Positions 1 through 57,155 of a DNA stretch of 64,000 nt are shown piece after piece. Positions within the stretch are counted from its first letter, which is position 1; every line of letters starts with the position of its first letter. The translations under genes were made by a program, and so were the position numbers. The stretch covers positions 2,728,001 to 2,792,000 of the forward strand of contig CATNEN010000012.1 in assembly GCA_950097015.1 (NCBI GenBank), given 5' to 3'. The notes below the pieces were generated by a model. That model was not told where the DNA came from and searched no databases. It was given only the letters and a program-made list of their open reading frames with translations. The DNA comes from Macrostomum hystrix (lineage: Eukaryota; Animalia; Platyhelminthes).

Positions 1-2
1 TG

Positions 3-818
3 GACCAGAGGATCGCCAGACAAGAGAAGCTGCTCCGCCTGAGAACGCTTCAGCGCCAAACAGCGGAGATTGAAGCCGAGCTTGGAAAGGACGGCCAGCG
101 CAGACAGAGTGGTAAGTCGACTAGCCCGATGCTGCTTAACCAAACCCTCAGTGCCCACGAGCCGGAGCAGCATCTGCCAGTGCCAGACTGGGAACTCCCC
201 GGCAGCTACACTAAGCCAGCTGCCACCTCGAGGCCTCTGCTGGTGAGAGACTTCATCGATCGTGACTTCGAGGAGCCTGCGCCCCAATTAGCGAAGACTA
301 GAGCCCGAACTGAGAACATCACGGCCGGTCAGTGGGTTGCAGGCAGCGGCCGCATCCTGCTGAGACTGCTTGACGACGGTGCCCTAGTCACAATGAGAAA
401 CGGCACCATGGATTTGAGTGAGCTGAAAGCCTATGTGCGGTACTGCGTACAGTTCGGCGAGTTCATGCATCAGGGCTTCAGCCAGGCCGCCCTCAACGAC
501 TACGACGAAGACTTCAGGATCCTGCAGCACCAGACCAGCGGCAACTGGGAGCGGGAGTCGTTGCAGCTGCTGTCCAAGCACATTCTGGCACCTAAACCCA
601 ATCCTGCTGGCAGTTCGACCTATTCGCGGCCTGGCTTCAAGTTCAGCAAAATGAGAAACCAGACAAGCGGCTTGGTCGGCCCAACCGACGCTGAAGGTCG
701 GGAGCTGTGCGTCAAATTCAACCGAAACAGCTGCCACAGACGCGACTGCAAGTTCAGACACGCGTGCTCTGCCTGCTACGCGGCGCACCCGCGCCAGCTC
801 TGCACGTCAAAAAACTAG
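3..818 (+). CDS. Gag-like ORF1 (5'-partial)
   Basis: The frame is open from base 3 (DQRIARQEKLLRLRTLQRQTAEIEAELG, coiled-coil-like), so the true start is outside the window. The C-terminal CVKFNRNSCHRRDCKFRHACSACYAAHPRQLC is C-x7-C-x4-C-x3-H plus C-x2-C-x3-H-x4-C zinc fingers, typical of DIRS/Ngaro Gag. Confidence 0.88.
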   Translation, partial: DQRIARQEKLLRLRTLQRQTAEIEAELGKDGQRRQSGKSTSPMLLNQTLSAHEPEQHLPVPDWELPGSYTKPAATSRPLLVRDFIDRDFEEPAPQLAKTRARTENITAGQWVAGSGRILLRLLDDGALVTMRNGTMDLSELKAYVRYCVQFGEFMHQGFSQAALNDYDEDFRILQHQTSGNWERESLQLLSKHILAPKPNPAGSSTYSRPGFKFSKMRNQTSGLVGPTDAEGRELCVKFNRNSCHRRDCKFRHACSACYAAHPRQLCTSKN

Positions 819-3292
819 ATTGCGGCCGGCCGGGGGACTTGACCGACGGCCCAGCTGCACCGGCCGATTCTGACAATGTCGATCACCCGCTCCCCCCTGG
901 CCGGCCTCAAGCTAAGCCCATCGAGTCCGTTGCCTTCTCTTCTGACCTTATCACCGCCGCCTGGGATGCCGAGCTGCTCGGCGATCCCGATCGTGACTTC
1001 CTGCTGAACGGTGTCCGCAACGGCTTCCGCCTCACCTGCCCCAGCGCCCCTGACAATCAGCCTAATAGCACTTTCTCTCAGAACTACTTCTCCGCTGACA
1101 GTAATCGGCTACTGGTCGAGCAGCAGGTGCGGGAAGAAGTGGCCAACGGCCGTTACGTGAAAGTTAGCAACAAGCCGGACGTCATCAGCGCCCTTGGTGC
1201 CATCCCGAAAGGAAACAACAAGATCCGGCTGATCCACGACTGCTCGCAACCTCCGGACCTCTCGCTGAACAGCCGTTTCTCCTCTGACTACCAGATCAAG
1301 TTTGAGACCGTCAGCCAGTTCACTGCCAAGCTGCAGCCAGGTTGGTTCATGGCGAAGGTCGACTTGGCCAATGCTTACCGCAGTGTCGGAATCAGTCCCC
1401 ACGACTTCCGCTACACTGGTCTACAGTGGAAGTTCAGCGATCAACCGAGCCCGACGTACCTGTGCGACACGCGCCTGCCATTCGGCGCGGCAGCTTCAGT
1501 GGAAGTCTTCCACCGCCTCAGCCAGTCCATCAAGCGCATGATGCAGCGACGCGGCTTCAGCAATATCGGGAGTTACCTCGATGACTTTGCCGTGGCGGCA
1601 GAAACTGAGATCGCCTGCCAGCAAGCTCTGGACACTCTACTTCATCTGCTGCGGCGTCTAGGCTTCTCCATCAACTGGAGCAAAGTAGCTCTGCCGTGCA
1701 CTAGGCTGGTGTACCTGGGCGTCATGATTGACACCAACAGCGGCCTGCTAGAGCTCCCAAAGGACAAGCTCGAGGTCACGAAAGCGCAGCTGCAATCCGC
1801 ACTCTCGCACAAGCGCATCACCAAGCGCCAGCTCCAATCTCTCTGTGGCCGCATCAACTGGGTTTGCCAGGTCGTCCATATCGGGAGGTGTTTCCTGAGG
1901 CCGCTCCTGCTGGAACTCAATAAGTTAAAGCAGCACTGCCACAAACTGCGCATGCACAACGATCTCCGCGAGACCATCCTCTGGTGGGTGGCCTGCCTGG
2001 CCAAGACCCCCAGCTGCCGCATCTGGAGGACCGCCGGGCCAGCCTGGGCAATCGAGTCGGACGCATCCAATTGGGGAGGCTGCGGCATCATCCGCGGCCC
2101 AGGCGTCACTAACTGGCTCATCATCGACTGGCAACGCGATAGTCCGGAGCTCGAAACTCTGCACATCAATTTTAAGGAGAGCCTCGCGCCCGTGTTCACG
2201 GCTCTGCACTTTCAACAAAAGCTGCAACCAGGAAGCAACCTGGTGATCTACTCGGACAGCACGGCCGCTGTCGGCGCCATCAACAAGGGCTCCTCGCCGA
2301 ACCCGATTGTCAACACAGCCCTGCAGCAGCTCGCGCTTCTCGCCGCTCACCGCGATCTCGTTATCCAAGCCTTCCACGTGCCTGGGACGTTCCAGATCTT
2401 TGCGGACAGCGGCAGTCGCGCAGATGACACCAGCGAGCTGGCAAATTTTCTGCTCCGGCTCTACGGCACAGTGGACATTGAAACTGACAACCTTCATGAG
2501 CACACCCTTTCGTCCGCCGCCCGCCAATTCCTTTCTTTGCAGATCGCTCGCCTACGGTCCCGGGTTCGCACCTCAGCCGCCGCTACCACGAGCTCTGCAG
2601 CCTGGCCTTCGCAGGCACGACAGCGCGCTCCTACCGCTGCCAGATTGCCTCCTGGCAACGCTTCTGTAAGCGAACGCGCATTGACAGCACCAGACCGTCA
2701 GCACAGCAGGTCGCGCACTACGTCATCGTGCTGGCCGACCGCCTCACATCGCATGCCAGCATTGGCGCATACCTTAACGCCGCCGACCTGTACTGCAAGC
2801 TGCAGACTGGCCGCGGCCTCCCAAGCGACCCTCGCATCGACCTGCTCCTCCGCGGCGTGCGACGCAAGCTGGCCAGGCCACCCGCGCGCAAGGCTCCAAT
2901 CAAGCCAAACCACCTGCTCAAAATGCGGGGAGTACTGCAGCTGCATATTCCGGAGGACGCAGCCTTCTGGGCGGCTGTCCTGGTCGGATTCTGGGGCCTG
3001 CTGCGCCGCGCAAACCTGTGCTGCCCGACCCCAATGCCGCCACCGGGAGAGGCCATCATCGTTGAAGACCTACGGCTGGGCTCGGACCTGGCAATCCTGC
3101 ATGTCCGCAAGTCCAAGACCAATCAGTTCCGTGAGCGAGTGCACCGCGTGGTCCTGCCACGCCTTCGACGCGAGGCGCAGCACCCGCTCTGTCCGGTGGC
3201 AGCGCTGCGACACCACCTGCACGCCAACCAGCCCGTCCCTGCTTCAGCCCATCTCTTCGCCTTCCGCCATTGCGGTGGTCTCGTGCCAATGA
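707..3292 (+). CDS. Pol ORF2: reverse transcriptase + RNase H (no ATG near its 5' end; probably reached by -1 frameshift)
   Basis: RT motifs KIRLIHDCS, MAKVDLANAYR, LPFGAAAS and YLDD (1574). RNase H motifs IESDASNWG, LHINFKES, IYSDSTAAVGAINKG and HVPGTFQIFADSGSR. No stops or frameshifts. Confidence 0.95.
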   Translation: MRQIQPKQLPQTRLQVQTRVLCLLRGAPAPALHVKKLDCGRPGDLTDGPAAPADSDNVDHPLPPGRPQAKPIESVAFSSDLITAAWDAELLGDPDRDFLLNGVRNGFRLTCPSAPDNQPNSTFSQNYFSADSNRLLVEQQVREEVANGRYVKVSNKPDVISALGAIPKGNNKIRLIHDCSQPPDLSLNSRFSSDYQIKFETVSQFTAKLQPGWFMAKVDLANAYRSVGISPHDFRYTGLQWKFSDQPSPTYLCDTRLPFGAAASVEVFHRLSQSIKRMMQRRGFSNIGSYLDDFAVAAETEIACQQALDTLLHLLRRLGFSINWSKVALPCTRLVYLGVMIDTNSGLLELPKDKLEVTKAQLQSALSHKRITKRQLQSLCGRINWVCQVVHIGRCFLRPLLLELNKLKQHCHKLRMHNDLRETILWWVACLAKTPSCRIWRTAGPAWAIESDASNWGGCGIIRGPGVTNWLIIDWQRDSPELETLHINFKESLAPVFTALHFQQKLQPGSNLVIYSDSTAAVGAINKGSSPNPIVNTALQQLALLAAHRDLVIQAFHVPGTFQIFADSGSRADDTSELANFLLRLYGTVDIETDNLHEHTLSSAARQFLSLQIARLRSRVRTSAAATTSSAAWPSQARQRAPTAARLPPGNASVSERALTAPDRQHSRSRTTSSCWPTASHRMPALAHTLTPPTCTASCRLAAASQATLASTCSSAACDASWPGHPRARLQSSQTTCSKCGEYCSCIFRRTQPSGRLSWSDSGACCAAQTCAARPQCRHRERPSSLKTYGWARTWQSCMSASPRPISSVSECTAWSCHAFDARRSTRSVRWQRCDTTCTPTSPSLLQPISSPSAIAVVSCQ

Positions 3293-3537
3293 CCGCCACC
3301 CGGTTCTGCCGCCTGTTTCGCCGCGCAGTCAACCTCGCCGGCCTGGGAGGACTATCGCTCTCACCGCACAGCCTCCGTCGCGGTGGTGCCTCCCTAGCCT
3401 TTCGGGAAGGCATCCCGCTGCCCGTCGTCAAGGCGCTGGGAGACTGGCGGAGTTCGGCGGTGGAGGCGTACCTTGGGTTGGAGTCGGGCCTCGACCTGCA
3501 ACTGGCTGCTGCTCAAAAACTATCAGCGTGCGTTTGA
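2500..3537 (+). CDS. Tyrosine recombinase ORF3
   Basis: The frame is open from 2500 and includes a SAM-like N-terminal domain (LAFAGTTARSYRCQIASWQRFC) upstream of the ORF-track start. Catalytic residues are intact: R (GLLRRANL), K (RKSKTNQ), HxxR (PHSLRRGGA), W (LGDWRS) and Y (AVEAYL). Confidence 0.95.
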   Translation, partial: AHPFVRRPPIPFFADRSPTVPGSHLSRRYHELCSLAFAGTTARSYRCQIASWQRFCKRTRIDSTRPSAQQVAHYVIVLADRLTSHASIGAYLNAADLYCKLQTGRGLPSDPRIDLLLRGVRRKLARPPARKAPIKPNHLLKMRGVLQLHIPEDAAFWAAVLVGFWGLLRRANLCCPTPMPPPGEAIIVEDLRLGSDLAILHVRKSKTNQFRERVHRVVLPRLRREAQHPLCPVAALRHHLHANQPVPASAHLFAFRHCGGLVPMTATRFCRLFRRAVNLAGLGGLSLSPHSLRRGGASLAFREGIPLPVVKALGDWRSSAVEAYLGLESGLDLQLAAAQKLSACV

Positions 3538-3802
3538 CCCTTGATCTGTCGCTCAAGCATTCTTTGTGACCTCTTTCTTTTGTACTCGCTGTGGACCAAG
3601 TGCCGGCGGCTTCTGTCTTCTGTATTTTTTTGCTTCACGTTTAGTTGTTGTGCTGCGCTCGCTGGTCTCGCTTGTAACTTCTTTACGCCTTCAACCATTT
3701 TGTGTTTTATGTTTTAGCTCTGTTTTAAGTGCGTACCGGCGTCACCCTATTTTGCATTTTATGTTGCGTGCCTCCCCCCTTCCTCTTCCTTTTTTTTGGG
3801 TT

Positions 3803-5376: not shown

Positions 5377-5906
5377 ATGGCAGTGCCCTTCAGCAACACA
5401 AAACTGCGCGTTCCCCGCGGTTTCCAGTCCCTCCTAGAGGGCTTAGCTCGGGAGGTCCTCCGCTCGCAGCCGGCCGACATCTACACATTCGGCGCCATGT
5501 ACTTTGAGGAGCTGGTTAGACGCCGGGAAGAAACCGGCGACGACGATCCTGCACAGCTGGCAGCCAAGGTTGAGGATCGTTTCTACAACAACACGGCCTT
5601 CCAGCAGCCCACCATCGATCCGTCCGATCCACAGCAGCAGGACGCGTCCAAGGTCATCCAGACTAACTTCAGGCGACACGCGGCGCAGAAGGAGGCAGCC
5701 AAGCTGCGCGAGGACAAAGCCGCCAGCGAGATTCAGTCCGCCGTACGCGGCCACCAGGAGCGCGAGGCCATCAAGTGAGCTGCCAGACTGCCTGCCACCT
5801 GCCCGTCTGCCTGCCTGCCTGCCTGCCTGCCTGCCCGTCTGTCTGCCTGCCTGCCTGCCTGCCTGTCTGCCTGTCTGCCTGCCTGCCTGTCTGTCTGTCT
5901 GTCTGT

Positions 5907-5943
<37 letters not shown>

Positions 5944-8900
5944 TGCCTGCCTGCCTGTCTGTCTGTCTGTCTGTCTGCCTGCCTGCCTGCCTGTCTGCCT
6001 GTCTGTCTGTCTGTCTGTCGGTCATAGTGTCTGTCTGTCTGTCAGACTGTCTATCTGTGTCCGTGTCTGTATGTTATCCAGTCTATCTGTCTGTATTGTG
6101 AAATATTGAGTGCCCGGTTGTGAAGTCTCGATTCTTATTGTTAGATTTATTGCTTTCAATTTTTTAAAGCTTCTTGAATGATAACCCCCGGGATTATGAC
6201 TTGCTTCTTATTCTTGTGATCAGAGAGAAGCATCAACGACAGGACGGCAGAGAGAGAGAGAGGCGGACAGGGCAAGAAAGTGCAAGCCAGATTAAGACAG
6301 ATTTGAGCTTACGAGATTAACCGGAGGCCAATGCGTCCTCGTACCCTCTCCTCCTCATTCAGCCGCTGTCTTAACTCTCTCCCCGTCTCGTCTCCCCATC
6401 GATCTAACACAGCAGAAAGCATTCAGTGACTCCCCTCCCCGCCAAGCCAGAGCAGATATTTCCCATTATTGATTGATATCGAGGGAGCAATTTTCTCAAC
6501 TTGCTTGCTCTCTCTCTTTCTTCCCCACTCTCTCTCTCTCTGATGCATTTCTACAATATCCACATCTATCTGCACGGTTGGCATCAAAACTAGACGCTTT
6601 GAAAGGATGGTTATGAAATCGAAATATTCCTATCGATAATATTTTATACCCAAAAGTACACAGCTTTATTATTTTTAACAAAAATTAGTTTTCTAATTTA
6701 GCTCGTATGACTAAAGTTGATTATGTTTCTGTTTCAGGCACACGGCTCCGGGACAGAATTCTGCGGAGGAGGTGGTGAGTGTAATAAGTTTTGCACTCTG
6801 CCTGCTTCAACATCCGTACGTGCCTAGATTCTGAACACCCTAGATTAAAAAATCCCTAGATTCCCAAAATCCCTGTCTTCCAAAATCCCTGTCTTCCAAG
6901 ATCCCTGGATTCCCACAATCCCTGTCTTCCAAAATCCCTGTCTTCAAAAATCCCTGTCTTCCAAAATCCCTGTCTTCCAAGATCCCTGTCTTCCAAAATC
7001 CCTGTCTTCCAAAATCCCTGTCTTCCAAAATCCCTGTCTTCCAAAATCCCTGTCTTCCAAGATCTTAGATCCAAGATCCAAGATCTTCTTAAATCCCTAA
7101 ATTCCTTAAATCCCTAGATTCCTTAAATCCCTAGATTCCTTAAATCCCTAGATTCCTTAAATCCCTAGATTCCTTAAATCCCTAGATTCCTTAAATCCCT
7201 AGATTTCAAAGCTCCTAGATTCCGAAAATCTTTCGATTTCAAAGTCAACAATATTTCAGGAAGTCTTAATATTCCCTGAAGTGTCCAGATTCCCTGAAGT
7301 ATCCAGATTCCCTGAAGTCTCCAGATTCCCTGAAGTGTCCAGATTCCCTGAAGTGTCCAGATTCCCTGAAGTGTCCAGATTCCCTGAAGTGTCCAGATTC
7401 CCTGAAGTGTCCAGATTCCCTGAAGTGTCCAGATTCCCTGAAGTGTCCTCATTCCCTGAAGTGTCCTCATTCCCTGAAGTGTACTCATTCCCTGAAGTGT
7501 CCTCATTCCCTGAAGTGTCCTCATTCCCTGAAGTGTCCTCATTCCCTGAAGTGTACTCATTCCCTGAAGTGTCCTCATTCCCTGAAGTGTCCTCATTCCC
7601 TGAAGTGTCCTCATTCCCTGAAGTGTACTCATTACCTGAAGTGTACTCATTACCTGAAGTGTACTCATTCCCTGAAGTGTACTCATTCCCTGAAGTGTCC
7701 TCATTCTCTGAAGTTTACTCATTCCCTGAAGTGTACTCATTCCCTGAAGTGTACTCATTCCCTGAAGTATCCAGATTCCCTGAAGTGTCCTCATTCCCTG
7801 AAGTGTCCTGATTCCCTGAAGTGTACTCATTCCCTGAAGTGTCCAGATTCCCTGAAGTGTCCTCATTCCCTGAAGTGTACTCATTCCCTGAAGTGTACTC
7901 ATTCCCTGAAGTGTACTCATTCCCTGAAGTGTACTCATTCCCTGAAGTGTCCTCATTCCCTAAAGTTTACTCATTCCCTGAAGTGTACTCATTCCCTGAA
8001 GTGTACTCATTCCCTGAAGTATCCAGATTCCCTGAAGTGTCCAGATTCCCTGAAGTGTCCTCATTCCCTGAAGTGTCCAGATTCCCTGAAGTGTCCAGAT
8101 TCCCTGAAGTGTCCAGATTCCCTGAAGTGTCCAGATTCCCTGAAGTGTCCAGATTCCCTGAAGTGTCCTCATTCCCTGAAGTGTACTCATTCCCTGAAGT
8201 GTACTCATTCCCTGAAGTGTACTCATTCCCTGAAGTTTACTCATTCCCTGAAGTGTACTCATTCCCTGAAGTGTCCTCATTCCCTGAAGTGTACTCATTC
8301 CCTGAAGTGTCCTCATTCCCTGAAGTGTCCTCATTCCCTGAAGTGTACTCATTCCCTGAAGTGTCCTCATTCCCTGAAGTTTACTCATTCCCTGAAGTGT
8401 ACTCATTCCCTGAAGTGTACTCATTCCCTGAAGTGTCCTCATTCCCTGAAGTGTACTCATTCCCTGAAGTGTCCTCATTCCCTGAAGTTTACTCATTCCC
8501 TGAAGTGTCCTCATTCCCTGAAGTGTACTCATTCCCTGATGTGTCCTCATTCCCTGAAGTGTACTCATTCCCTGAAGTGTCCTCATTCCCTGAAGTGTAC
8601 TCATTCCCTGAAGTGTACTCATTCCCTGAAGTGTACTCATTCCCTGAAGCGTCCTGATTCCCTGAAGTGTCCTCATTCCCTGAAGTGTCCTGATTTCCTG
8701 AAGTGTCCAGATTCCCTGAAGTGTACACATTCCCTGAAGTGTCCTGATTCCCTGAAGTGTCCAGATTCCCTGAAGTGTCTTGATTCCCTGAAGTGTCCAG
8801 ATTCCCTGAAGTGTCCTGATTCCCTGAAGTGTCCAGATTCCCTGCAGTTTCAAGATCCCAAAATGCCATTTATTTCCGTCATCTTCCTCAAGGATATTGA

Positions 8901-11900
8901 TTTGAATGATCCCGAAGTCGAGGCGGCGGCCGCCAAAATCCAGGCTGGCTTCAAGGGCTACAAAACTCGCAAGGAGCTGCTGGAGAAGAAGCATGACCAG
9001 CCTGAGGCCTCAAATAAGGAGTCTGTGAGTACTTTGAGTGGCCTGTCGTTTCCTATTGAGAATAGCTGCTGATTGATCTGAGGATAGCTGTTTATTGATC
9101 TAAGTATAGCTACTGATTGATCTGAGGATAGCTGCTGATTGATCTGAGGATAGCTGCTGATTGATCTGAGGATAGCTGCTGATTGATCTGAGGATAGCTG
9201 CTGATCGATCTGAGAATATCTGCTGATCGATCTGAGAATAGCTGCTGGTTGATCTGAGAATATCTGCTGATCGATCTGAGAATAGCTGCTGATCGATCTG
9301 AGAATATCTGCTGATCGATCTGAGAATAGCTGCTGGTTGATCTGAGAATATCTGCTGATCGATCTGAGAATAGCTGCTGGTTGATCTGAGAATATCTGCT
9401 GATCGATCTGAGAATAGCTGCTGATCGATCTGAGAATATCTGCTGATCGATCTGAGAATAGCTGCTGGTTGATTATGTCATATTTTATGACATTTCGCAA
9501 AAGTGCAAAGCCAGTGAGCACCAAGTGTCCAAGAAATCTACACTGGTGTTCTGTTAGACGTCTTGTCTTTGAGGCGAGTGAATAAAAATAGAATATATTT
9601 CTAGAATGAAAACGACGTGACATATGTGCTAAATGTAAGGAAGATATTTCCCGAACTAAACTTTTTTCTAAGAAGTGCAATGAATTGATGCATTGCGTAC
9701 GCATTGCCAGCTGTAGCCGGTTTGCATTCGGTGTCTCCTCTTCAGTGGGACCGCACTTGGGTGAACACAGGAGAAGGAATATTGTGCGTATCCTCTCTCT
9801 GGCTCTCTTGCTTCTATCGGGAAAGCATTCTGGCCAACAACCGTATTTTCTACCCGTGACCAAAGCTTTGTACTTGAATCGCACGACACTTCTTTCGCCG
9901 TCCAATTGAGCCACTCGTTGATTGATTTGCTGATAGAAAAAACTGTGCTGCATTGTCAAAGTATCAGCCTACAAAGCCTTGACATTTCTTCTCAAATGAG
10001 CCTGACTTTCATAGACTTGAGAGTTTTCGATGCAGCGATTTGAAACTCTTGTCTTGGTCACCTATAGGCGAGAAGTTTGTCAGAAATCCTTGTCCCTTAT
10101 GCAATACTTGTAGAAGCGTTATAAAGTTGAAACATTATTCTAACTATTTAAATTAAAATATGATTCTTAAATGCAATTTTTTTACTTAGGGGGTGAAAAG
10201 GAGTCGCCGAAAAATTAATAATTCACAGCATAGCTATTTTTCAATTTCGTTTCTACTAACGACTACTTGTAAGTAGCGAGTAGCGAGTAGCGAGCTTTTC
10301 TTTTTGCTGGACTATTTTTTCTATATGAGAAAAAATATAGATGTTTCTACAATTGTTTGTTGCGATGATTGTGAGTAGCTTGGCCTTGAAAAAATTGACA
10401 GTTCTGACAATTTTTTATTAAATACACCTATGTAGTCAAAGGTAACTGAGTTGTGAGTGTAGTTATATTTTTATTTTTCTGCACCTCGTATTTTGGTGAG
10501 TGCTACAAGAGGTGAGTAAAAATAGTGCTGTCTCGCTTTCTACTAGTTTGCCAATTTCTTAAGTTCATCCATTCTTTCTGGCTGTGTGCGCTCGCGCTGT
10601 GAATTGTCATCATTGAATAGCTCACGCAGTGCCATGAGTGTACGCTCGTATGTTATTGCGTTTGTGAGAGGGGTGAAGCGTTGCTTGTTTAAATTGATGC
10701 ATTAAGGCTCATTAGACAAAATGGGCGCTCGCCACAGTCGGGGTGCCACAGGGCAGCGCTCAGAAAAGAGGACACAAAAATCAATAAAATTCTACTCTCT
10801 CTCCCCCTGGCTTTCCTGTCTGACCTTCCCGTCTCTCCCTACCGCAAGGGTTGAGGTTGCTTCGCCTCTCGGGGCAATGTACACTAATCTTAGGCTGAGG
10901 CAATGTACATTAGCCGAGGCTCGTTTTTATTATCTAAGTATCGCTATATGGTCCTGTGGCTTTGTGTCTGTGGATTTCCATTTTGTTTTAATATATTAAT
11001 GCACGCCAAGCAAAAAAGTTGCTTTATTGACATGGTGAACATGTTGTGCCGATTTTATTCTCGCAATAGAAGTAGCAAAGTAGTACTTACGCATATTTTT
11101 GGATATTTATCGTTTCGTTAAAAAATGTTTGTAGGAGAGACCCACTTCAGACGTTGGAGCTGATTAATTCTTGTTACACTATTATTTCCCACTGTACAAA
11201 ATTTCCATGCATGGTGTTGTCTTTGCGAGCGTATTGTGTAACTTGTTTGCGGCTTTAAATCAGTGACCTGTAATAATTCGCAGCTAGCCTACGACTGCAA
11301 TGATCTCGCTCATTGCGCTCATTAAAGTGTTCACCGTATGAACTGCCCGTATTAGGTGCAGGTCTAGCGAAGCTAGGAGTAGTGTAGAGTGTACAATTTG
11401 TAGCATTACGTATGCAGCTGAAGCAGAATCAGTTCACATTTGTATAAATAGTATCTGGCTTACAACATAAGTGTATGCATCGCCTCTCCTTGCCCTTACA
11501 GTAGAATTTGAATGCGAAATTAGCAGTCCCCTAAAAGCAACTGCAGTAATTACTTACGCGCAGTAATATGAAGAGTATAGGGGGGGGCAGAAACAGAGGT
11601 AACCACCAGAGAGCAGAGAGACTGAGTGCGGAGCACTGTGCGCTTGCGGCCCTCTGCCACCGCAGCCGCAAGAAAACAAAACCCCGCCGGTACCGTATTC
11701 CATTCTGCATGGGCCGGATCCAGCGAGCGAGCAAGAAAGGAAAGAGTGGGGAGGAAGAGAGAGAAGAGCAGAGCCGTACACCGCGGGTTTTTGCGCAAAC
11801 AAGCGCTTCGGAAAGCAGCGAGCGACAGCACAGCCCTGTCTCCTTTTAGACCAGACAAAAGTAAGAGCGACAGGACAGAAACCATGTGCTCGGCGGAGCC

Positions 11901-14900
11901 CTAGACGACAGAACTCTGCGACTCAAGTTTAAGCCTCACCGGCTGTAGCGCTTGCATTAATTGGCTCTGCTTTAAATAGCAGAAGACGAAACAGGAGCAC
12001 CAAGAGAGAAAACTAAAAGGGAAGAGGAGTTTTTCAATACAAAAAACCTGCCGACGCAGCTCAGCTCACAGAAGGGAAAGAATTGTTCGCTTGAAGTTGT
12101 GAAACACTTTTCCTACTGCTCCCTAGGCTACGGAAACCCTGGTGGCTGTCTGCTAAACTCGTCCGCAGTCTTAAGCCTTGAGCTCGCAGCGTTCGCCCGC
12201 ACTTGTCTGCAGCCTGGCAGTGCAGCGCCCTCGCAGCAGGGATCGCAGCTATTTCGCTTTCTGCGCTATCGGATTAAGAGCGTTGCTTTTCTTCTCATCT
12301 GCCGGCATAGGTTGCCTTGATGCGCATTTGTACACACTCTGAGGACTAACGCACTGAGAGCGGAAGGTAAACCACAGAAGTTTTCTCTTTTCCTTGCTGC
12401 TAAACTCCTGCGCAAACTCTGCGGCAAGTCGACGGCATTTAAACACATTATATCTCTTCCTCGGCAGCAGAGGTTCTAACTTGAATATTTCATTGTGAAA
12501 CGTCAGTAAGCACCGGCAAGCCATGTTGGGCTGTTTTGGTAGGCGCAAGAAGAAGAACAAGGACGCAGGAAAGTCGGGCGAAAAAAGCAGCGGAGGCAAC
12601 CCTCCCGTGTCGAAGACAAGCGCTTATAATGACAATGATCGCACACGCGCACCTACAGCTCCTGCGGAGTTAAAAGTCGCCGACAAACAGGTGAAACAAC
12701 AACAGCTGGTGACACCCCAGATCAATGCTTTCGAGCAGAATCAAATTCAGCCGGATGGCAGTCCAGCAGAAGTGGCTGAGACAATAACTGTGACCAGATC
12801 CCAGAGCATGCACAATGCTCCGCCGAAAGCTGGCAACATAAAGAAGGCAGCTACTATGAGTCGATACGATTTCCTGCGCAAGCAGGACAATATTAACTAC
12901 GCCGATAGGTGGGCGGCGCTTCGGCAGCGTTACCTGGCAGCAAAGCCTGAGAATGGGAGTGTCGTTAGCGGCGACGCTGGTGGCGGTGGCGGTGGCTCCG
13001 ACTTGCAGCCAGTTAATGGGCCGTTAAAATCGCCCCTGAGAGCTGCAGCAGCGCATTCGCTGCCGCGTCAATTCTCGCCATCATCGGACGGCACGCCATT
13101 GCCAGTGAAATTCTCCGACTGGTTTTACGACCGTCAGACCAGAGAAGCGGAGGCGCGGCGGGAGTTCCACGACAGGGAGGAGCGAATGCTGGTGAGACCG
13201 GATGGTCGATCGAGGTCTCTAGGGGAGAGCATTGGGAAGAGGGATAGACTGGTTGCGTAAAGATTCATTTTCTTGATTTACCTTTAAATAGAGGTTCCTC
13301 TGGTTTTTTTCTTTGATTTGTGTGTTCATGACGTTTTTCTGTCCTTATGACAGTATTTTCTAATGAATCGGGTCATTCGCTTCCACTATTTCGAAGCTAG
13401 AATACTTAACGTATTTAAGTTAAAGTTCCCTTAGCTTAGACATTAAAAAAATCATCCGTGTGTAATGTTGCTTTGTAATTGCTTCGTTAGCCACAATCCA
13501 GTGCATGCTAATGAGGGTCATGAACAGCAGAAAGATCACGCTATTTTTGCCTTGGGAAAACACGTCACGGGGGGGAATTTCAAATACCCACTGCCTACTA
13601 CACGCTAGCTCCCAAACTGAATGACCGATTTTCGTGAAAGTCCTCCATATGGATTAAAATTTTCTGCCCTTTACGATGAACTTTCAAAGCCGTCCGATGT
13701 CAGCATCGTCGAGATATTCAGCGATTCTAGTCGAAGACCCTGTGGGCAAGAACTAGTAACATAGTTATAAGTAAAAAACTTCGATATGGTGAATCCATAT
13801 TGGTTTCAAAAAACTAAAAAATGTACTATTAATCAAACCAAAATAGTCAACAATGATACGCTCGTAGCTGTAGTTTCGGGTTTCATTCAGAACTGCTCTT
13901 GCTCAGAGGACGTGTGCCGACTGTCATTTTGCGCATCTGGGGAGAGGGTCTAGGCATGAGAAAAATGCATTTATTTGAATAAACTGCGAGAAATATTGTA
14001 TTTTAGTTTATTTCGACTTCTAAATCTGCGTCTTTACAAGAGTGCTTTATGCATTAAACCTCCGTGCCTGTCATCTAAACTTTGTTTTCATTCAGCTGTG
14101 GACAAACATGCTAAGCAGAATTACTTTTCAAAATTAAGATTGCGCGGCTTAAAGTCTAACCACTTTTCGTCGCCTGGTCGTCTATCGAGCTGTCACGAAA
14201 ACAAGTTTAGTGGCATAGTTAGTAAACATTCCATATGAAACTTCGCGCACGGACGCACGTGCTGATATCCTCATAGCAACTTGTGTGAGGTATCCAGAGC
14301 TGCTCTGCGTGTAACTTATATCGATTCCTCCACCTTAGTCCTACCTTCGCTCTTGCCTATGATAAAAGGGGTGTGATCGGATTTGTTTAACAAAGCTGGT
14401 ACAACGAAAAACTACTAGTGACAGCTTGCGTTTAGCTTATCACTATACGGCCGGCCGGGCCAGTCGCTACAATCAACGAATTGTTTGCTTTGCACGCATG
14501 TTTTATTTGTCTAGCATAAGCATGGATTCACTGTAGATTCAATGTGAGTATGGATTCTTGCTGTGAAAATTCATTCTCACGAGCACGATCTTCAACATTC
14601 ATGTGTATACAGAAGAGCGTCTCTGTTAATCCATAAAATCATGAATTGTATTTTATACTATCTAAGAATATGCCTAGGTTCTTAGTATCTGAACTTGTTC
14701 AGAAATCTTCGATCTATGAATTGACTTATTTTATTCCCCCTGAATCCGCTCATTTGGACAGAAAATCATCGAGGGCCCCTCGCAGGAGGACCTGGAGGAG
14801 GCGGCAGTGAAGATCCAGGCTGGTTACAAGGGCTACCGGACGCGGAAGGAGATGAAGGCCAGGCGAGAGGTGAGTCTAACTGTCGGTGCTAATCATATTT

Positions 14901-17900
14901 ACTAAATATTTAGCATAAGCTGCTCAGACAACACCAGCTATCATGTTAACTACGCTTCGCTGCCGTATCTTAATTCATAATCTGTCTAACAGTGAAATCT
15001 GTCTAATCTGTCTGTCTATTCTATTCCAATCTGCGTTGCTTTCAGGCCATGAAGGCAGCTCAGGCAGCAGCTCAGGCTAAACAGCCTCTGCAGCCTGTTG
15101 ACAATGCCGCACCTCAGCCTGAGCCAGTCCAAACCGAGACAGGGGGTCAGGAGGGTCCCAATGAGGAGGTAGACATTGATCTAGAAGACCCAGAGGTACA
15201 GGCCGCTGCTGTTAAGATCCAGCGAGGCTGGAGCAGTCACAAGTCTAGGGCTAAGAAAACAGAGGAGCCAGATTCAGCTGAAATAGCCGAAGAGACTGCA
15301 CCTGGGCCTTTTGAAGACCAGAAGAGCAAAGAAGAAGAGGAAGTAGATATCGACTTAGAGGACCCAGAGGTACAGGCCGCTGCTGTTAAGATCCAGAGAG
15401 GTTGGAGCAGCCACAAGTCGAAGACTATGGCTAAGAAGACTGAGGAGACATCCAATGAACCCGTTGAAAGCGAGAAGAACAACGAAGAAGAAAAAGTAGA
15501 TATCGACTTAGAGGACCCGGAGGTGCAGGCTGCCGCAGTCAAGATCCAAAGGGGCTGGAGCAGCCACAAGTCTCGGGCTAAGAGCACTGAGGAGGCAGGT
15601 GCAGCCGAGACTGCCGATGACGTCCCTCAGGAGCCTGCTGATGTCAAGAAAGGGGACAGTGAACAGCAGGAAATAGACATAGATCTGAATGATCCAGAGG
15701 TGCAGGCGGCCGCCATTAAGATTCAGCGCGGCTGGAGTAGTCACAAGTCTCGAGCTGAGACGGAGGACTCAACTCAGTCAAAGGTATTATCCTCGTCATC
15801 AGGTTTACTCACGAACTTTATTTTGGTTTTGACACCGAATAGCTGTTCATTCCTCGATCGATATTAGCTAACAGGCACGAACCCACTAGGCCGAAATAGC
15901 AACCTCAGAAAAATTATCACAGAGTTTAGTCACCTTGCTTTTGATGTGTCATTACTCATAACTTTTGTTGCATTTACGTTTACCCGTCAAGTGCCATTGT
16001 ATGGTTGAAGGAACTCGCATTTATTTATCCGCCTTGCATGAAAATATTCAGTGATCGATGTTATGTAATGCTTTACTCACTATTTATTGCTTTCTTACCA
16101 ATACCGTGGGCAAGGCTGCATGTGGTTTGTACCTAGACCCGTTCGCAGTAACAAAGGAACGTTGAAACCGTGAAACGATTTCTGTTTTCTGGACAGATTT
16201 TCCCTTATTGTGATTGAACCGAGGAACAGTGCTTAATTACTTCAGGCAAATAGTTTAAAGAGATCTGAAATAATTGAAAACTTGTCGAGTCAACAAAAAA
16301 CCCAATCGCTTCACGACGTTAACAAACCATGCCTTTACTACCAAGCGCTCCCGGGTTCAACTCTATATATCGTGCCAGTCGCACAGGCCTCACTAACCTG
16401 GCTGTTACTTTCTGGTTCTCTTTTTAGGCGCAGCAGCTGCAATGAGAAACCCAATTAGTGCTGATTCAGCAAAGCCGCTTGTCAACATGCTCATAGACAT
16501 GCTCATAGATACTAACAATGCTTACTCAAAGCCTTTCCGCGGCAACCTTCTGTGTGTTGTCATTTTTTGGCACGCTTATATACTAAAACATCTCTATGCC
16601 TCATTTGTGCAAGACTTAAACCTATTCTTCCGTAAGCAGTTGAAAATGAGCCAACGGTTTCAGTGTTGGGCACTTGTGCAGTTACCGCCCGCAATGTCTG
16701 CGAAGAAGACAAAATACGATTTCAAATTTCACAATGGCCCAACGCTGTAACAGTTGATGTCTTTTTGTTTAAAATGCGCTATGAACTTAATATCTTCTTC
16801 TTTAACTTTATTTCACTTATGTGCACGTGCCGATATTATAAAGCATTAAGAAATTACTGGTGCACATTTTACACCTGATGAATGACGGACCTATATCAGC
16901 TTATCATTCTTAAATGTTGATTGGTTGGTTGGTCTGTCCACTAAAAGAGCTGGCATCGCTAGTAGACAATGTATTTTTGGACCGGTAATGTCAGTAATGA
17001 CAAATTGATTGTCAAATAAATAACACGAGATACCGATAGAAAGGAGCTAATGATTTTGAACACGCTCAAATTCACGCCAATCTTACATACGATTAAACTT
17101 CCAACACCAGCCAGCAGTAAAGATGTTTGGACACAGTTTCACTGGTTGCTAAATTTAAATCTGACAACTTTAGATGCCAAACCAAATTTCGCATTAACTC
17201 CTACACCAGCTATAACCTTCGGTGGTACAAGCCTTTGAAGTTTTAAAGCGCATATGCTGCAAAATCACGGAAGCCCTATTCGATTTTTATTTCCGGCACT
17301 AACAAGATGTTTCTAAGCGAAGGTGCAAGAACTTTGCCAGTCAGATTAAGTAGAAAATAATTAATATCAGGTGGCTGTGTGCACCTGGCCGCTTCAGCTA
17401 GTTAAATAAGGACTAAGGACCATACACCCGAATTCACGTAGCTGTCCTCATTCCTGTACCGTAGTGTGGCAGCGACCATTCCATCTGTTTTTCTCACCTT
17501 TCTAATACCTTGGCTGGCTAATAGCGTGCATTCGGATGCATAAATACCGTGTTAGTCGGTCCTGGCCTCTCTAATCTGAAGACATTTTATTTAAATAGCT
17601 TGTTTCCGGTGCGCAATTACTTACTGAGCCTGAGGCAGCACTCACGAGTATATAGTAGGCCTGTGCATCAGTCGCTTCTTTCGCAGTTTCGTTCAAACTT
17701 GCATTCGTCGCATTCAATCGACCATCATGAGCGCCTTTTTATGCTGCTTTGGCGACAGAAAGCCCGCCTCGGGCAGGGGGTTGATGGCGAAGCGGGATAA
17801 AAAGGTAAAACACCTTCTTCAAGGCGCGCCAAGCCAAACTCAAACTCAACGATATGCTGATCATCTTGGAATTTTTAATTCCTGTTTCTGAATTTTTGTT

Positions 17901-20900
17901 TAATTGCTAAGTTCAATTTCGAAAACGTTAATTTTAGCTTTTTATCTTTATTTCATTAGTTACTACTCCGGCTCACACCATCTATTAAAACACTAACGCT
18001 CCCCTATTATTGATTTGTGTTATAATTTTCTAAACCTTTTTTTCTCCTTTCAGGGTGACGACGAGGTGCCAGCGGGTGACGCCGAAGCGGCAACTGCCGA
18101 GAAGCCGCATGAGGAGGAGCCAAATGAGAAGCAGCTAGCCGAAAATGCTCAGGTGAATAGAGATCATAAGTACATTGAGTCTAAGATCGTAGAGTTCCAA
18201 ATCACGCTTGTGTTCCTCGTTGAGCCCAGCCAATCAGAAAATAGAAGAGACTAGAATAATCAATAGAGAGACCTGGGCGATACGCATTCGCACGGATTAG
18301 AAGCACTTTAATTTGCATGACTTGAGACGAGGAATAATATTGACTTTTAATTTTACGATTCTTTCAAATTTTATACAGTAACTAGAAAATAACTAGAAAG
18401 GCCCGTTCTATAAAGCTTGCCTATCGCTGTGTTCAAACTCCAATCGCTGAAATTTGCTCTGTCGAGAGAGGAACTTATTTCAAACTTTGCACCAAACCGC
18501 ACCGCAGCCGGAAGCCGCTCAGGACATTGACCTGAACGACCCGGAGCTGGCCCAGGCGGCCACCAAAATCCAGGCCGGCTTCAAGGGCTACCAGACACGC
18601 AAGAAGCTGAAGGATGAGCTGGGCCATCAGGAGGAGCAGCAGGTCGAGGAGCAGCATGAGACTGAGGAAGAGGTAGGTCAATGTTCTATTATCCGAGATG
18701 TTTGACACGAACTAGAGAAGTCTCGGATAGCCAATTAAGCGCTGTGATTTACGATTGTATTGATTGTATTGATTACCAGTTCACGGGGTATCAAAGTAGC
18801 ATGAGGATAAGCATTTGCAAGTAGAATAAATAAATATATCTCTTCTTATAAACCATATTCTAATTAGTGTTTTTCAACTAAAAACTATTTTGCTTACTAA
18901 TATTGCATTTGACGATTCACTGCGTGAATTCTTCATATTCACCTACTCCTCCCACACGCCCCCTTAGCAACAAGTTCCCACAATAGCAGTGCCCGATGCA
19001 TTGCTCAAATTCAATGCCGAGCCCGTCCCATCTCATGAGCAGCCAATTGACGCGAGGGAGACTTTTGGGGCTCAGCATTCACTGACTATTGGCGCCGTAA
19101 ATGAGACTGTGGAAGAGCAAACGGCTGCGTTTGCTGAGAGTTCTCCGGTTGAGAAGACTGAGGAGGATGAGACAACGACTAAAAAGACTATTAAAGAGGC
19201 CATATTAAAAAAACTGACAGTCGAAGAGGAAGCTACCGAGAAGGTCGAAACCTTGGAAGAGGAAGCCACCGAGATGGTCGAAAGCGTGGAAGAATCAGCA
19301 ACCGAGAAGGTCGAAAGCGTGGAAGAATCAGCTACCGAGATCGTCGAAAGCGTGGAAGAATCAGCTACCGAGAAGGTCGAAAGCGTGAAAGAATCAGCAA
19401 CCGAGAAGGTCGAAAGCGTGGAAGAATCAGCAACCGAGAAGGTCGAAAGCGTGGAAGAATCAGCTACCGAGATGGTCGAAAGCGTGGAAGAATCAGCAAC
19501 CGAGAAGGTCGAAAGCGTGGAAGAATCAGCAACCGAGATGGTCGAAAGCGTGAAAGAATCAGCTACCGAGATGGTCGAAAGCGTGAAAGAATCAGCTACC
19601 GAGATGGTCGAAAGCGTGGAAGAATCAGCCACCGAGATGGTCGAAAGCGTGGAAGAATCAGCAACCGAGAAGGTCGAAAGCGTGAAAGAATCAGCAACCG
19701 AGAAGGTCGAAAGCGTGAAAGAATCAGCTACCGAGATGGTCGAAAGCGTGGAAGAATCAGCTACCGAGATGGTCGAAAGCGTGGAAGAATCAGCCACCGA
19801 GATGGTCGAAAGCGTGGAAGAATCAGCCACCGAGATGGTCGAAAGCGTGGAAGAATCAGCCACCGAGATGGTCGAAAGCGTGGAAGAATCAGCCACCGAG
19901 ATGGTCGAAAGCGTGGAAGAATCAGCCACCGAGATGGTCGAAAGCGTGGAAGAATCAGCCACCGAGATGGTCGAAACCGTGAAAGAATCAGCTACCGAGA
20001 TGGTCGAAAGCTTAGAAGAATCAGCTACCGAGATGGTCGAAAGCGTGGAAGAATCAGCAACCGCGAAGGTCGAAAGCGTGGAAGAATTAGCTACCGAGAT
20101 GGTCGAAAGCGTGGAAGAATCAGCTACCGAGATGGTCGAAAGCGTGGAAGAATCAGCTACCGAGATGGTCGAAAGCGTGGAAGAATCAGCCACCGAGATG
20201 GTCGAAAGCGTGAAAGAATCAGCTACCGAGATGGTCGAAAGCTTAGAAGAATCAGCCACCGAGATGGTCGAAAGCGTGGAAGAATCAGCAACCGAGAAGG
20301 TCGAAAGCGTGAAAGAATCAGCAACCGAGAAGGTCGAAAGCGTGAAAGAATCAGCTACCGAGAAGGTCGAAAGCGTGGAAGAATCAGCCACCGAGATGGT
20401 CGAAAGCGTGGAAGAATCAGCCACCGAGATGGTCGAAAGCGTGGAAGAATCAGCCACCGAGATGGTCGAAAGCGTGGAAGAATCAGCCACCGAGATGGTC
20501 GAAAGCGTGGAAGAATCAGCCACCGAGATGGTCGAAACCGTGAAAGAATCAGCTACCGAGATGGTCGAAAGCTTAGAAGAATCAGCCACCGAGATGGTCG
20601 AAAGCGTGGAAGAATCAGCTACCGAGATGGTCGAAAGCGTGGAAGAATCAGCTACCGAGATGGTCGAAAGCGTGGAAGAATCAGCTACCGAGATGGTCGA
20701 AAGCGTAGAAGAATCAGCTACCGAGATGGTCGAAAGCGTGAAGAATCAGCTACCGAGATGGTCGAAAGCGTGAAGAATCAGCAACCGAGAAGGTCGAAAG
20801 CGTGAAAGAATCAGCTACCGAGAAGGTCGAAAGCGTGGAAGAATCAGCTACCGAGATGGTCGAAAGCGTGGAAGAATCAGCAACCGAGATGGTCGAAAGC

Positions 20901-22914
20901 GTGAAAGAATCAGCTACCGAGATGGTCGAAAGCGTGAAAGAATCAGCTACCGAGATGGTCGAAAGCGTGGAAGAATCAGCCACCGAGATGGTCGAAAGCG
21001 TAGAAGAATCAGCCACCGAGATGGTCGAAAGCGTGAAAGAATCAGCTACCGAGAAGGTCGAAAGCGTGAAAGAATCAGCAACCGAGAAGGTCGAAAGCGT
21101 GAAAGAATCAGCTACCGAGAAGGTCGAAAGCGTGGAAGAATCAGCTACCGAGATGGTCGAAAGCGTGGAAGAATCAGCTACCGAGATGGTCGAAAGCGTG
21201 GAAGAATCAGCAACCGAGAAGGTCGAAAGCGTGAAAGAATCAGCTACCGAGATGGTCGAAAGCGTGGAAGAATCAGCTACCGAGATGGTCGAAACGGTGG
21301 AAGAGGAAGCTACCGAGAAGGTCGACGCTTTGAAAGAAGAAGCTACCGATAAGGTTGTTGCCGGGTCTTCTTACGCTATCGAAGGTGGCTATGATGAAGC
21401 TGAGAACCTTCAAGCGAAGTCTGGCGCGACCGTTAATTTGGACGCAGCTGATGAGCTTTCGGTAGCTGATGAGCTTCTACTTGAGGCAAGAGCGGCTAGC
21501 ACTGAGTCTATCGGAGTTGCCTGATTATCAATTTTACGTTATCCCTGTACTCAACGCTTAATTTTTTTTTTTTAAATTTATTCGTTTTACCTTCAAAATC
21601 GATTATGGCCTGCCATTTTGCACGAGCTGCATGCCGTTCTGCGCTTTGCATTTCGCATTTTCTTAATTCCAGGATTTTATTTAAAATTTGGTGCCATGCC
21701 GGAATAATTTCTCGTTATTCCTCGTTGGTCGCAGCACCTGGCTCGATCTTGGTTTCCTAATTCCTGGCCCTAAGATCGGATTTCTGTCTCGAAATTGTAT
21801 TTTATTGCCTCCATAATTGAAAACATGCGTCATATCATTAAACTGCTCTGGTATTTAATTCATGAGCAGCTTTGACCAGCTGTCAGAACAACTCACTAAT
21901 TTTCAGGTCTTAGATAGAAATCAGCATTTTTTAGAGACATCAAAATTCCTAGTTAGATGACTAACGCATTCAGTTCCGCCAGTTCCCTTTGCAAGTTTAG
22001 GCGATAATTTTCAGGTCTAGGAATTTTTCTGATGCATGGTCACAGTTCATTGCTTGTTAACTAATTATAAACGGTAAACGATGTTAACAGAGCGCTTCCG
22101 GAGTTTTAATGTACTGTAAATGTAAACTTTCTCGCTCCTATACTATCATGCGACTGTATACTCGTAAAATCGCATAATCTTCAACTAGACAACATCATTT
22201 TTCTGCTCATGTCAAACTGAAATTCATTTTTCCATCTGCAAATCTAATCAACAGCAGCAGCAGCAGCAGCCAGCGGCAGACGAGGAGGAAAAGACTGAGG
22301 AGGCCGACAAGGCTGAGCCGGCGGAGGCCGAGGCAGCGGACGCAGCCATTGACCCCAATGACCCGACCAAGAACCTGGCGGCCGCCAAGATTCAGGCCGG
22401 TTTTCGCGGTGAGTCAAAATTATTAGGTGGTGCAGGTGGTGTCTGTAGTAACCATGACGGTGTGCCCGCTCGGTTTCGAACTCTAGGCATGCAAGCGCGC
22501 AAAGAGGTCGCCGAGATGCGCAAGCAACACAAACAAGACACAGCCGCCACCGAAGCCGCCGACGGCGAAGCTGCAGCAGAAGCTGAGCCTGAGGCCGAGC
22601 CTGAAGAAGTGGCTGAGGGTGATGCTGAGGCTGAACCGGAAGCGCGGCCAGAAACCGAGGCAGAGCCTGAGGCTGAACCTGAAGCGGAGTCTAAGCCAGA
22701 GCCTGAAGCTGAGGCTGAGCCTGAAGCTGAGGCTGAGCCTGAAGCTGAGGCTGAGCCTGAAGCTGAGGCTGAGCCTGAAGCTAAGGCTGAGCCTGAAGCT
22801 GAGGCTGAGGCGCCAACTGAATCAGCGGCGGCCGCTGCTGCCCCAGGTGAGGAAGCGGCAGTGGCGACAGACGCAGCGGGTGGCGACGAGGGAGAGGAGC
22901 AGCGCGACGAATAA
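5377..22914 (+). CDS. SPA17: Sperm surface protein Sp17-like RIIa dimerization/docking-domain protein with 10 IQ calmodulin-binding motifs (~752 aa, multi-exon)
   Basis: N-terminus MAVPFSNTKLRVPRGFQSLLEGLAREVLRSQPADIYTFGAMYFEEL matches the Sp17 RIIa domain. Phase-consistent GT-AG exons: 5377-5774, 6738-6774, 8893-9024, 14762-14869, 15046-15783, 18054-18152, 18508-18672, 22255-22408, 22487-22914. Motifs rejoin across introns (EEV|DIDLNDPEV, IQAGFRG|MQARK). Confidence 0.85.
5780..6060. repeat. (CCTG/TCTG)n microsatellite, intronic
   Basis: Tetranucleotide run starting just after the 5775 splice donor. Confidence 0.95.
6840..7205. repeat. 16-bp (AAATCCCTGTCTTCCA) and 17-bp (AAATCCCTAGATTCCTT) minisatellites
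   Basis: Tandem periodicity visible directly. Confidence 0.9.
7270..8845. repeat. 18-bp minisatellite (TCCCTGAAGTGTACTCAT / TCCCTGAAGTGTCCAGAT), roughly 85-90 copies
   Basis: Near-perfect 18-bp period. It generates the FPEVYS/TLQGMS pseudo-ORFs and ends about 45 bp before the 8893 exon. Confidence 0.95.
9065..9470. repeat. ~22-bp minisatellite (GATCTGAGAATAGCTGCTGATC)
   Basis: Tandem copies just after the 9025 donor. Confidence 0.9.
12523..13191 (+). CDS. Putative alternative first coding exon of the Sp17/IQ gene with a GAP-43-like Cys/polybasic N-terminus
   Basis: GCC-ATG with an in-frame upstream stop (12496) and N-terminus MLGCFGRRKKKNK. A phase-0 donor CTG|GTGAGA at 13192 matches the phase-0 acceptor at 14762. 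Unspliced, the ORF ends at 13260. Confidence 0.6.
18968..21524 (+). CDS. Putative alternative terminal exon encoding ~60-65 copies of an acidic 11-aa repeat (ESVEESATEMV), interrupted by two 1-nt deletions
   Basis: Phase-0 acceptor CCCTTAG|CAA at 18968, in frame with the preceding exon. A 33-bp repeat spans ~19240-21330, with unique coding-like sequence on both sides and a stop at 21524. Single bases are missing at ~20740 and ~20772. Confidence 0.6.

Positions 22915-57118: not shown

Positions 57119-57155
<37 letters not shown>

Follow-up and report, generated by a model that had tools for sequence, protein, structure and literature searches.

Can a single locus give one set of putative calmodulin-binding exons two different cellular addresses? 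The question is raised by an Sp17-like gene of the flatworm Macrostomum hystrix, located in a stretch of 64,000 nucleotides (nt) that we refer to as the window (positions 2,728,001 to 2,792,000 of contig CATNEN010000012.1, assembly GCA_950097015.1; the exons described below are all on its plus strand). Inside an intron of this gene lies a long exon, hereafter the nested exon, whose reading frame begins with a cysteine close to the N-terminus followed by basic residues. The initial annotation had seen in it the start of a membrane-targeted isoform similar to GAP-43 (neuromodulin), made from its own promoter next to an Sp17-type isoform. On balance, we consider it probable that the locus provides its shared IQ exons with different N-terminal addresses, either the Sp17/RIIa module or the lipid-anchor-like, GAP-43-like nested exon. 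The RNA evidence consists of assembled contigs (library type unrecorded) aligned to positions 11900-17899 of the window, i.e., 6000 letters. Four runs coming from two studies were compared (X1, X4, X5, and X6, of which X4 to X6 belong to one study), and homology searches were run exon by exon. X4 to X6 behave as RNA: the exons are covered, GT..AG joints are present, and the depth drops to zero at 13300-13500 and 13900-14700.

Two first modules and one common exon

The nested open reading frame (ORF; 12523-13260) sits inside an intron of 5737 nt (9025-14761) opened by the donor of exon 8893-9024. It begins with MLGCFGRRKKKNK, which contains Cys4 and a basic cluster, and an in-frame TGA at 12496 precedes its ATG (context GCCATGT) by 27 nt. 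After exactly 223 codons there is a GT donor in phase 0 at 13192, the coding part of the exon being 12523-13191; a second GT is located at 12691. The ORF, the in-frame stop, the motifs, the phase-0 donor, and the intron were all found where the initial annotation had placed them. Three parts can be distinguished in the encoded segment, the N-terminal MLGCFGRRKKKNK, a disordered middle, and a terminal helix reaching the donor, and its conserved motifs are RYDFLRK, DRWAAL..YL, SLPRQFSP, and VKFSDWFYDR.

The exon is transcribed and spliced. Contigs at 99.8% identity run from ca. 11871 (X5), 11891 (X6), and 11968 (X4) to the donor at 13191, and the joint from 13191 to 14762, which skips the 1570 nt of a GT..AG intron (13192-14761), was recovered in X5 and X6, in which the contigs go on for 31 letters past it. 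The predicted junction between the nested exon and the next IQ exon was thus found when looked for in the RNA contigs. A scenario in which the ORF is an independent, unspliced gene was rejected, the coverage ending at the donor and resuming in exon 14762-14869. The weaker donor at 12691, which had also been proposed, gave no joint in any of the four runs. Upstream of the ATG there is a leader of at least 650 nt (11871-12522, delimited by the contig starts in X5, X6, and X4) that contains one or two short upstream ORFs, as found by a scan of upstream ATGs and stops; no upstream joint into the nested exon was reported by the contigs over 11900-17899. Within the 13192-14761 intron, a high-copy repeat at ca. 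13500-13800 is matched by many contigs at 90 to 95% identity, with a summed depth of ca. 130 to 900 and varied loose ends. Judging from these matches, the repeat is expressed from many genomic copies.

The alternative first module starts with an Sp17-type coding exon at 5377-5774 (donor GT at 5775) that encodes an RIIa docking/dimerisation domain, a VEDRFYNN block, and two IQ-like motifs. The solved human Sp17 is matched by this exon over residues 1-134 of 151 (phmmer, E=5e-31), and its identity to the M. lignano protein A0A1I8GWL3 is 95.6%. An N-terminal RIIa domain, the EDRFYNN block, and IQ motifs, the hallmarks of Sp17, are therefore found at the locus, the nested-exon isoform being devoid of the Sp17-specific part. 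On the same side, there is an IQ exon at 8893-9024 (DIDLNDPE...KIQAGFKGYKTRK, phase 0-0, with a Pfam IQ match) that is spliced to 14762. The 30 loose letters preceding 14762 in contigs of X1, X4, X5, and X6 are identical to window positions 8995-9024, and therefore, the Sp17-side exon uses the same acceptor as the nested exon. One 1377-nt contig of X1 reaches beyond exon 14762 by 609 letters on the upstream side, where the Sp17-side letters adjoin the exon, and by 659 letters on the downstream side, and would fit a single mRNA that begins at the Sp17 start and includes the downstream exons. The common exon (14762-14869, KIIEGPSQEDLEEAAVKIQAGYKGYRTRK..., 36 codons, phase 0-0, acceptor AG at 14760-14761) has a Pfam IQ match (E=1.6e-6) and, according to the RNA contigs, two alternative partners upstream and two downstream. 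Hence, two mutually exclusive first modules are spliced to one exon, by the joints from 9024 to 14762 and from 13191 to 14762. In this respect, the earlier picture of two 5' modules on one IQ scaffold stands, but the nested exon does not belong to the GAP-43 family by sequence.

Some features of the Sp17 side deserve mention. The Sp17 exon ends two bases into a codon and exon 8893-9024 opens in phase 0, which leaves a phase gap within 5775-8892. Because of this mismatch, a small exon of 3n+1 bases is to be expected between them, matching QSAPEQGSAEEV in M. lignano. A CTGC/GTCT microsatellite (5780-6070) follows the Sp17 exon, and exon 8893-9024 is flanked by an 18-bp minisatellite (7271-8848, 88 copies, with several open frames) and a 22-bp repeat (9057-9473, 19 copies).

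Conservation of the nested exon and of its layout

The nested exon is under purifying selection. Its ortholog was found in the Logan contig P0001 (locus L016) which, like the contig P0007 described below, was assigned by similarity to another species of Macrostomum. The identity of the encoded proteins is 63% by BLASTP and 68% in our alignment (A1). The L016 alignment spans exactly from the ATG to the GGTGAGA donor, and nothing aligns before or after, i.e., the leaders are not conserved. The ratio of nonsynonymous to synonymous substitution rates (dN/dS) is 0.12 over 206 codons, with dS near saturation. Paralogs were also detected in the same genome, on contigs C39, C13, and C38, together with a near-duplicate of the C13 copy on C24, giving four to five copies overall. 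The initial annotation had described an exon of unique sequence; instead, the same layout recurs at four to five paralogous loci, this one included, and the locus has yet another Cys-rich start, the third, at 17727 (see below). Regarding the near-duplicate, the beginning of C24 (1-10000) repeats the acyl exon and an IQ exon of C13:689000-695000 with identical motif DNA, due either to a recent duplication or to a haplotype that was left uncollapsed.

The paralogs are 42 to 48% identical in A1 (47 to 56% in the local matches of the genome search), and all the copies start with M-x(1-2)-GCFG-x-RK and end with REE(R/K)xx followed by a GT donor. Residues M1, G3, C4, F5, G6, R8, and K9 are invariant, and residues 14-80 cannot be aligned, the N-terminus being the best-conserved block of an otherwise disordered exon. 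This starting motif is present in all six members of the family; the other family motifs are RYDFL, DRW..L..YL, SLPRQF.P, and V.FS.WF. A back-translated G-C-F-G-x-R-K-K pattern had four matches in 220 Mb, only at the family loci (the control gave none). An exhaustive profile search of 1.84 billion protein representatives retrieved six clusters, of which P0003 to P0006 are from M. lignano and P0001 and P0007 are the Logan contigs assigned to Macrostomum by similarity, and a word-based protein search with the nested exon had only Macrostomum matches. Judging from these searches, the exon family seems to be found only in Macrostomum. Scanning the nested exon against Pfam produced only a sub-threshold chance match, the ESM Atlas provided no usable match for it, and no contig turned up when P0004, P0091, and P0146 were looked up exactly. 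The AlphaFold2 model, built from the six-sequence alignment, has a mean predicted local distance difference test score of 54 and is mostly disordered, with helices at residues 126-138 and 197-222.

The layout is conserved too. At four paralogous loci, the acyl exon has an Sp17/RIIa exon 7 to 22 kb upstream on the same strand, and three of the four (C12, C13, and C39) have IQ exons downstream. Downstream of the C39 copy, there is a KIIEGP...KIQAGFKGY exon that is the ortholog of 14762-14869, the same order found in the M. lignano protein P0005, and at the C13 locus, eight IQ exons are located between the RIIa exon and the acyl exon. Since paralogous loci have the same layout, the nested arrangement has outlived several old duplications.

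Is the nested exon really a first exon? We read it as the first coding exon because of three lines of evidence, namely the stop codons before the ATG, a gene model, and an independent mRNA. The M. lignano model BOX15_Mlig019204g1 (P0005) starts with MLGCFGRRKKK and continues into the IQ exon. In a further species (P0007, locus L032), the ORF of a spliced mRNA contig of 2671 nt opens with MPFGCFG... after a leader of 989 nt that is free of Sp17 sequence, and it encodes three IQ motifs. On the other hand, the M. lignano protein A0A1I8GWL3 (P0004, 898 amino acids [aa]), which is colinear with the window exons, includes the orthologous exon, in frame, after its Sp17 part, and both this model and A0A1I8GUB1 (P0031, 930 aa) connect the Sp17 exons to MLGCFG... 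by a linker of 32 residues within a single frame. They would fit an internal cassette of the Sp17 mRNA, in which the Cys motif is internal and provides no N-terminal anchor. We find this very improbable. The frame is broken by the TGA in M. hystrix and by a TAA 15 nt before the ATG in the L016 species (SRR28338166), and therefore, in-frame inclusion behind the Sp17 exons is impossible there. Moreover, conservation begins exactly at the ATG, with no conservation of the leaders, the ATG and the adjoining motif are invariant in all the paralogs, and independent mRNA and gene models begin at the nested exon, for which no joint with anything upstream was reported. The two long M. lignano models probably merge two isoforms.

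Transcript starts and the remaining exons

If the nested exon is the first one, how is its transcript started? The initial annotation had noted CCAAT/TATA-like motifs near 11960-11980 and inferred alternative promoters. An ATTGG (11960-11964) and a TATA-like TTTAAATAG (11971-11979) are indeed present. However, the contigs of X5 and X6 begin ca. 80 to 100 nt before the TATA-like motif, which lies inside the transcribed region and not upstream of the transcript start. The ATTGG/TTTAAATAG pair was thus rejected as the core promoter of the contigs starting upstream, since it cannot serve these transcripts as a -30 box. Although contigs cannot prove where a transcript begins, their ragged starts suggest an end near 11870, and the nested exon may have its own promoter. 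The same isoform could also be produced without one, by spliced leader (SL) trans-splicing or other processing of a long transcript started at the Sp17 promoter, in which case it would be RNA processing that picks the address. This seems unlikely to us, even if several facts speak for it. Between 10 and 20% of the M. hystrix genes are SL trans-spliced, some of them with several SL sites (PMC10468722), so that a 5' end is possible without a promoter. There are acceptor-like sites just before the contig starts (e.g., a pyrimidine run and AG at 11841-11849), and the position of the TATA-like motif within the transcript, not ahead of it, points in the same direction. Nevertheless, contig starts at 11871, 11891, and 11968 are unlike a single trans-splice junction, and the zero depth at 13300-13500 and 13900-14700 indicates that a long primary transcript is not abundant. 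No SL letters were reported either, but the aligned stretch starts at 11900, past the place where they would have been visible.

A short motif, TTTAAATA(G), is found upstream of all three start exons of the locus (at 5284, 11971, and 17590). The 9-mer TTTAAATAG has seven sites in the window versus 0.7 expected. Further TTTAAATA(G) sites are located at 13283 and 23943 and, on the minus strand, at 10144, 31048, and 61119, and X4 contigs begin 1 to 3 nt before two of the sites. The motif may act as a promoter element or mark a context for trans-splicing, among other possibilities.

The third start exon (17727-17804, leader from ca. 17540, donor GT at 17805) has 26 codons and starts with MSAFLCCFGDRK. 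Contigs of X4, X5, and X6 stop matching at 17805 and carry ca. 25 further letters. It is probably a third alternative, Cys-rich first coding exon feeding the same downstream exons, presumably by a junction from 17804 to 18054. The CFG-x-RK motif is common to the third start exon and the nested exon, and the former has a CC in that context. With this partner, the product would be a short GAP-43-like protein, with a CC N-terminus, the acidic exon, and then AATKIQAGFKGYQTRKKLK. In one run, low-depth contigs span 15784-17805 without a gap and may represent a retained intron or a long leader.

Downstream of the common exon, an optional cassette exon (15046-15783, 246 codons, donor GT at 15784, splice sites placed by sequence) contains four DIDLEDPEVQAAAVKIQRGWSSHKSR repeats, i.e., four IQ motifs, while M. 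lignano carries two repeats of this type. The joint from 14869 to 15046 was found in X4 only, and the contigs covering the cassette in X4 to X6 lose their match at 15784, those of X6 carrying extra letters. The loose letters after 14870 are, in all four runs, those of window positions 18055-18081, and therefore, the common path goes from 14869 to 18054 and skips the four-IQ exon. The exon joined directly to 14869 in this main path is acidic and has 33 codons (18054-18152). It is followed by a common IQ exon (DIDLNDPELAQAATKIQAGFKGYQTRKKLK, 18508-18672, Pfam IQ match), located outside the RNA-aligned stretch and delimited by splice sites in the sequence, that is 68% identical to residues 645-701 of P0004. 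The last two coding exons (22255-22408 and 22487-22914) were placed by homology, using tblastn with residues 699-898 of P0004, and splice consensus only. They encode an IQ motif split by a 78-nt intron and then an acidic tail of EAEPEA repeats, with the stop codon at 22912-22914. With this set of exons, the nested-exon isoform is predicted to have 540 aa and three IQ motifs, or 786 aa and seven IQ motifs with the cassette (223+36+246+33+55+193). The latter is the isoform that the initial annotation had proposed; its size agrees with the placed exons, but the four-IQ exon turns out to be optional and is skipped by the 14869 to 18054 joint in four runs.

Two other regions of the window have repetitive or mobile DNA. 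Positions 18968-21524 contain a 33-bp tandem array (19231-21325, 63.5 copies) with an open frame of >800 aa made of VESVEESATEM repeats. This frame is in phase with an AG at 18966-18967 and broken at 20773, and the array is missing from the M. lignano ortholog; the region could be exonic, a minisatellite within an intron, or an artifact of the assembly. At the beginning of the window (1-3540), there is a DIRS-like retroelement with a reverse transcriptase and a tyrosine-recombinase-like ORF.

Proposed membrane anchoring and its parallels

What would the swap of first exons achieve? The upstream module encodes an almost complete Sp17, the RIIa domain of which would tether the protein to partners with amphipathic helices, e.g., in axonemes. 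The nested exon would start a separate class of mRNA, adding 223 residues that begin with MLGCFGRRKKKNK. Cys4 would be S-palmitoylated, and the palmitoyl group, helped by the basic cluster and by the hydrophobic residues next to Cys4, would keep the disordered chain with its IQ motifs at a membrane. There, the protein may work like GAP-43, as a membrane-bound reservoir of calmodulin. In GAP-43, the first 10 to 20 residues, among them Cys3, Cys4, and basic residues, are enough to have a protein palmitoylated and bound to membranes.

Several points weigh against this reading. Besides the M. lignano model with the exon behind the Sp17 part and the abundance of SL trans-splicing, already mentioned, there is a single N-terminal Cys, not two, and S-acylation is putative. 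Neuromodulin and Neuromodulin_N had no Pfam match in exons 12523-13257 and 17727-17888 (hmmscan, E up to 1), and the IQ motif of exon 18508-18672 matches that of the ciliary radial spoke protein 23 of Chlamydomonas (E=1.6e-6) better than that of neuromodulin. In addition, the read evidence consists of assembled contigs only, which do not establish transcript starts, full-length connectivity, or isoform ratios, and in X5 and X6 the comparison with the genome covers the contig letters from 11900 onward. A more specific objection is that the isoform is real and its conserved N-terminus is something other than a lipid anchor, such as a binding or degradation motif or a metal/redox site, in which case the isoform would be soluble. 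The lone Cys fits this possibility, as does the fact that the Gly-Cys-Phe-Gly core is not a described palmitoylation consensus and that no function came from Pfam, the ESM Atlas, or a structural match. We still regard it as quite unlikely, because the strict N-terminal position followed by four to six basic residues is the established pattern of S-acylated proteins like GAP-43 and PSD-95, the third start exon has a CC in the same CFG-x-RK context, and molluscs have a myristoylation-type exon at the equivalent spot (see below), which suggests that membrane anchoring is what selection has favored.

The resemblance of the putative membrane-anchored isoform to GAP-43, described as vertebrate-specific (PMC8034164), lies in the Cys at the extreme N-terminus followed by a basic cluster, in the long, disordered, acidic body, and in an IQ motif of the type AATKIQA-F-G--TRKKLK in exon 18508-18672 that aligns to the neuromodulin IQ (PDB 4e53, E=0.032). 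It differs in having one Cys versus two, three to seven IQ motifs versus one, and IQ exons in common with an Sp17-type isoform. The Ser target of protein kinase C in KIQASFRGH was not found in the IQ motifs of the window type (KIQAGYKGY, KIQAGFKGY, KIQRGWSSH, and KIQAGFRGM), which have Gly or Arg instead. With Sp17/SPA17, the nested-exon isoform shares only the downstream IQ and acidic exons, the Sp17-specific part being absent. An acidic DIDL-DPE stretch followed by an IQ motif is reminiscent of neurogranin and PEP-19, and the PEP-19 IQ is among the PDB matches of exon 18508-18672. The defining feature of calpacitins, a Pfam IQ after an acidic stretch, is present, with IQ matches at 14762, from 15049 onward, and from 18454 onward, and calmodulin binding is predicted accordingly by sequence. 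Alternative N-termini are known for the Drosophila protein igloo. Igloo has been listed as an invertebrate calpacitin related to GAP-43 (PMC9618489).

As a type of regulation, the swap of an N-terminal targeting signal by alternative first exons is familiar. In AKAP18, alternative first exons swap the N-terminus of a common core, and across the AKAP18 and KChIP families the resulting N-termini are myristoylated, palmitoylated, or not lipidated. The isoforms of KChIP also swap their N-terminal targeting signal by alternative first exons (PMC3973911). Both belong to unrelated families, and what replaces the lipid anchor in the window locus is an RIIa docking domain. What is new is the exon family restricted to Macrostomum; the known kind is the alternative first exon that swaps a targeting signal.

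A search with the Sp17 part of P0004 retrieved long proteins with RIIa and IQ arrays from molluscs, a nemertean, echinoderms, a hemichordate, and a copepod. In five mollusc species, RefSeq isoforms swap the RIIa exon for one starting with MGGKFSRLKNF..., MGGKLSRLADIV..., MGNNFS..., or MGAKFSKF..., all of which fit the N-myristoylation consensus followed by basic residues, and after the junction at ETGHDP..EDRFYNN they are identical to the RIIa isoforms of the same genes. Such isoforms, of the MGGKLS/MGGKFS type, were found in Mytilus, Haliotis, Ruditapes, and Lymnaea. In Mytilus edulis (L033), a 9-kb intron separates the RIIa exon (10001-10153) from exon 2 (at 19141) and contains the MGGKFS exon (17548-17640, donor GT). 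The mollusc exons have 22 to 34 residues with Gly2, Ser6, and basic residues, join before EDRFYNN, and are not related in sequence to the flatworm exon; we take them to resemble the N-termini of BASP1 and MARCKS. Since molluscs swap the RIIa domain for a lipid-anchor type of exon, the swap is not peculiar to Macrostomum. A literature search for acylated Sp17 isoforms found no paper. As a separate observation on this mussel locus, the Sp17-like model at 52660-58544 (OY782960.1) runs into a C-terminus with a Pex19 domain, which may be a read-through or a merge with a neighboring PEX19 gene.

The synteny of vertebrate genes bears on how old the swap could be. We take human SPA17 and NRGN to be direct neighbors on the same strand. 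NRGN and SPA17 are listed within the same intervals of ca. 1 to 1.3 Mb in human, chicken, and cattle. Zebrafish nrgnb has even been called spa17 (PMC9415131). At the locus of a lizard (Lacerta), SIAE and SPA17 form a head-to-head pair, and no second IQ exon was found in the 10 kb downstream of SPA17. That the RIIa/lipid-anchor swap is an old property of Sp17-type loci, at least spiralian in view of the Cys-type exon of flatworms and the myristoyl-type exon of molluscs, and that acylated or Cys-N-terminal IQ proteins now regarded as vertebrate-specific (neurogranin, which shares a small locus with SPA17, and perhaps GAP-43 and BASP1) descend from the lipid-anchored promoter of such a locus by gene fission is a speculation that we consider unlikely.

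Macrostomum is tractable by transgenesis, which makes it a suitable animal for work on this locus. Sp17 has been viewed as a protein of cilia and sperm and the GAP-43 type as neuronal and proper to vertebrates; here, a single invertebrate locus would make both kinds from shared exons. It would be a concrete case of one calmodulin-buffering scaffold sent to two places and may provide a lead on the origin of acylated IQ proteins.

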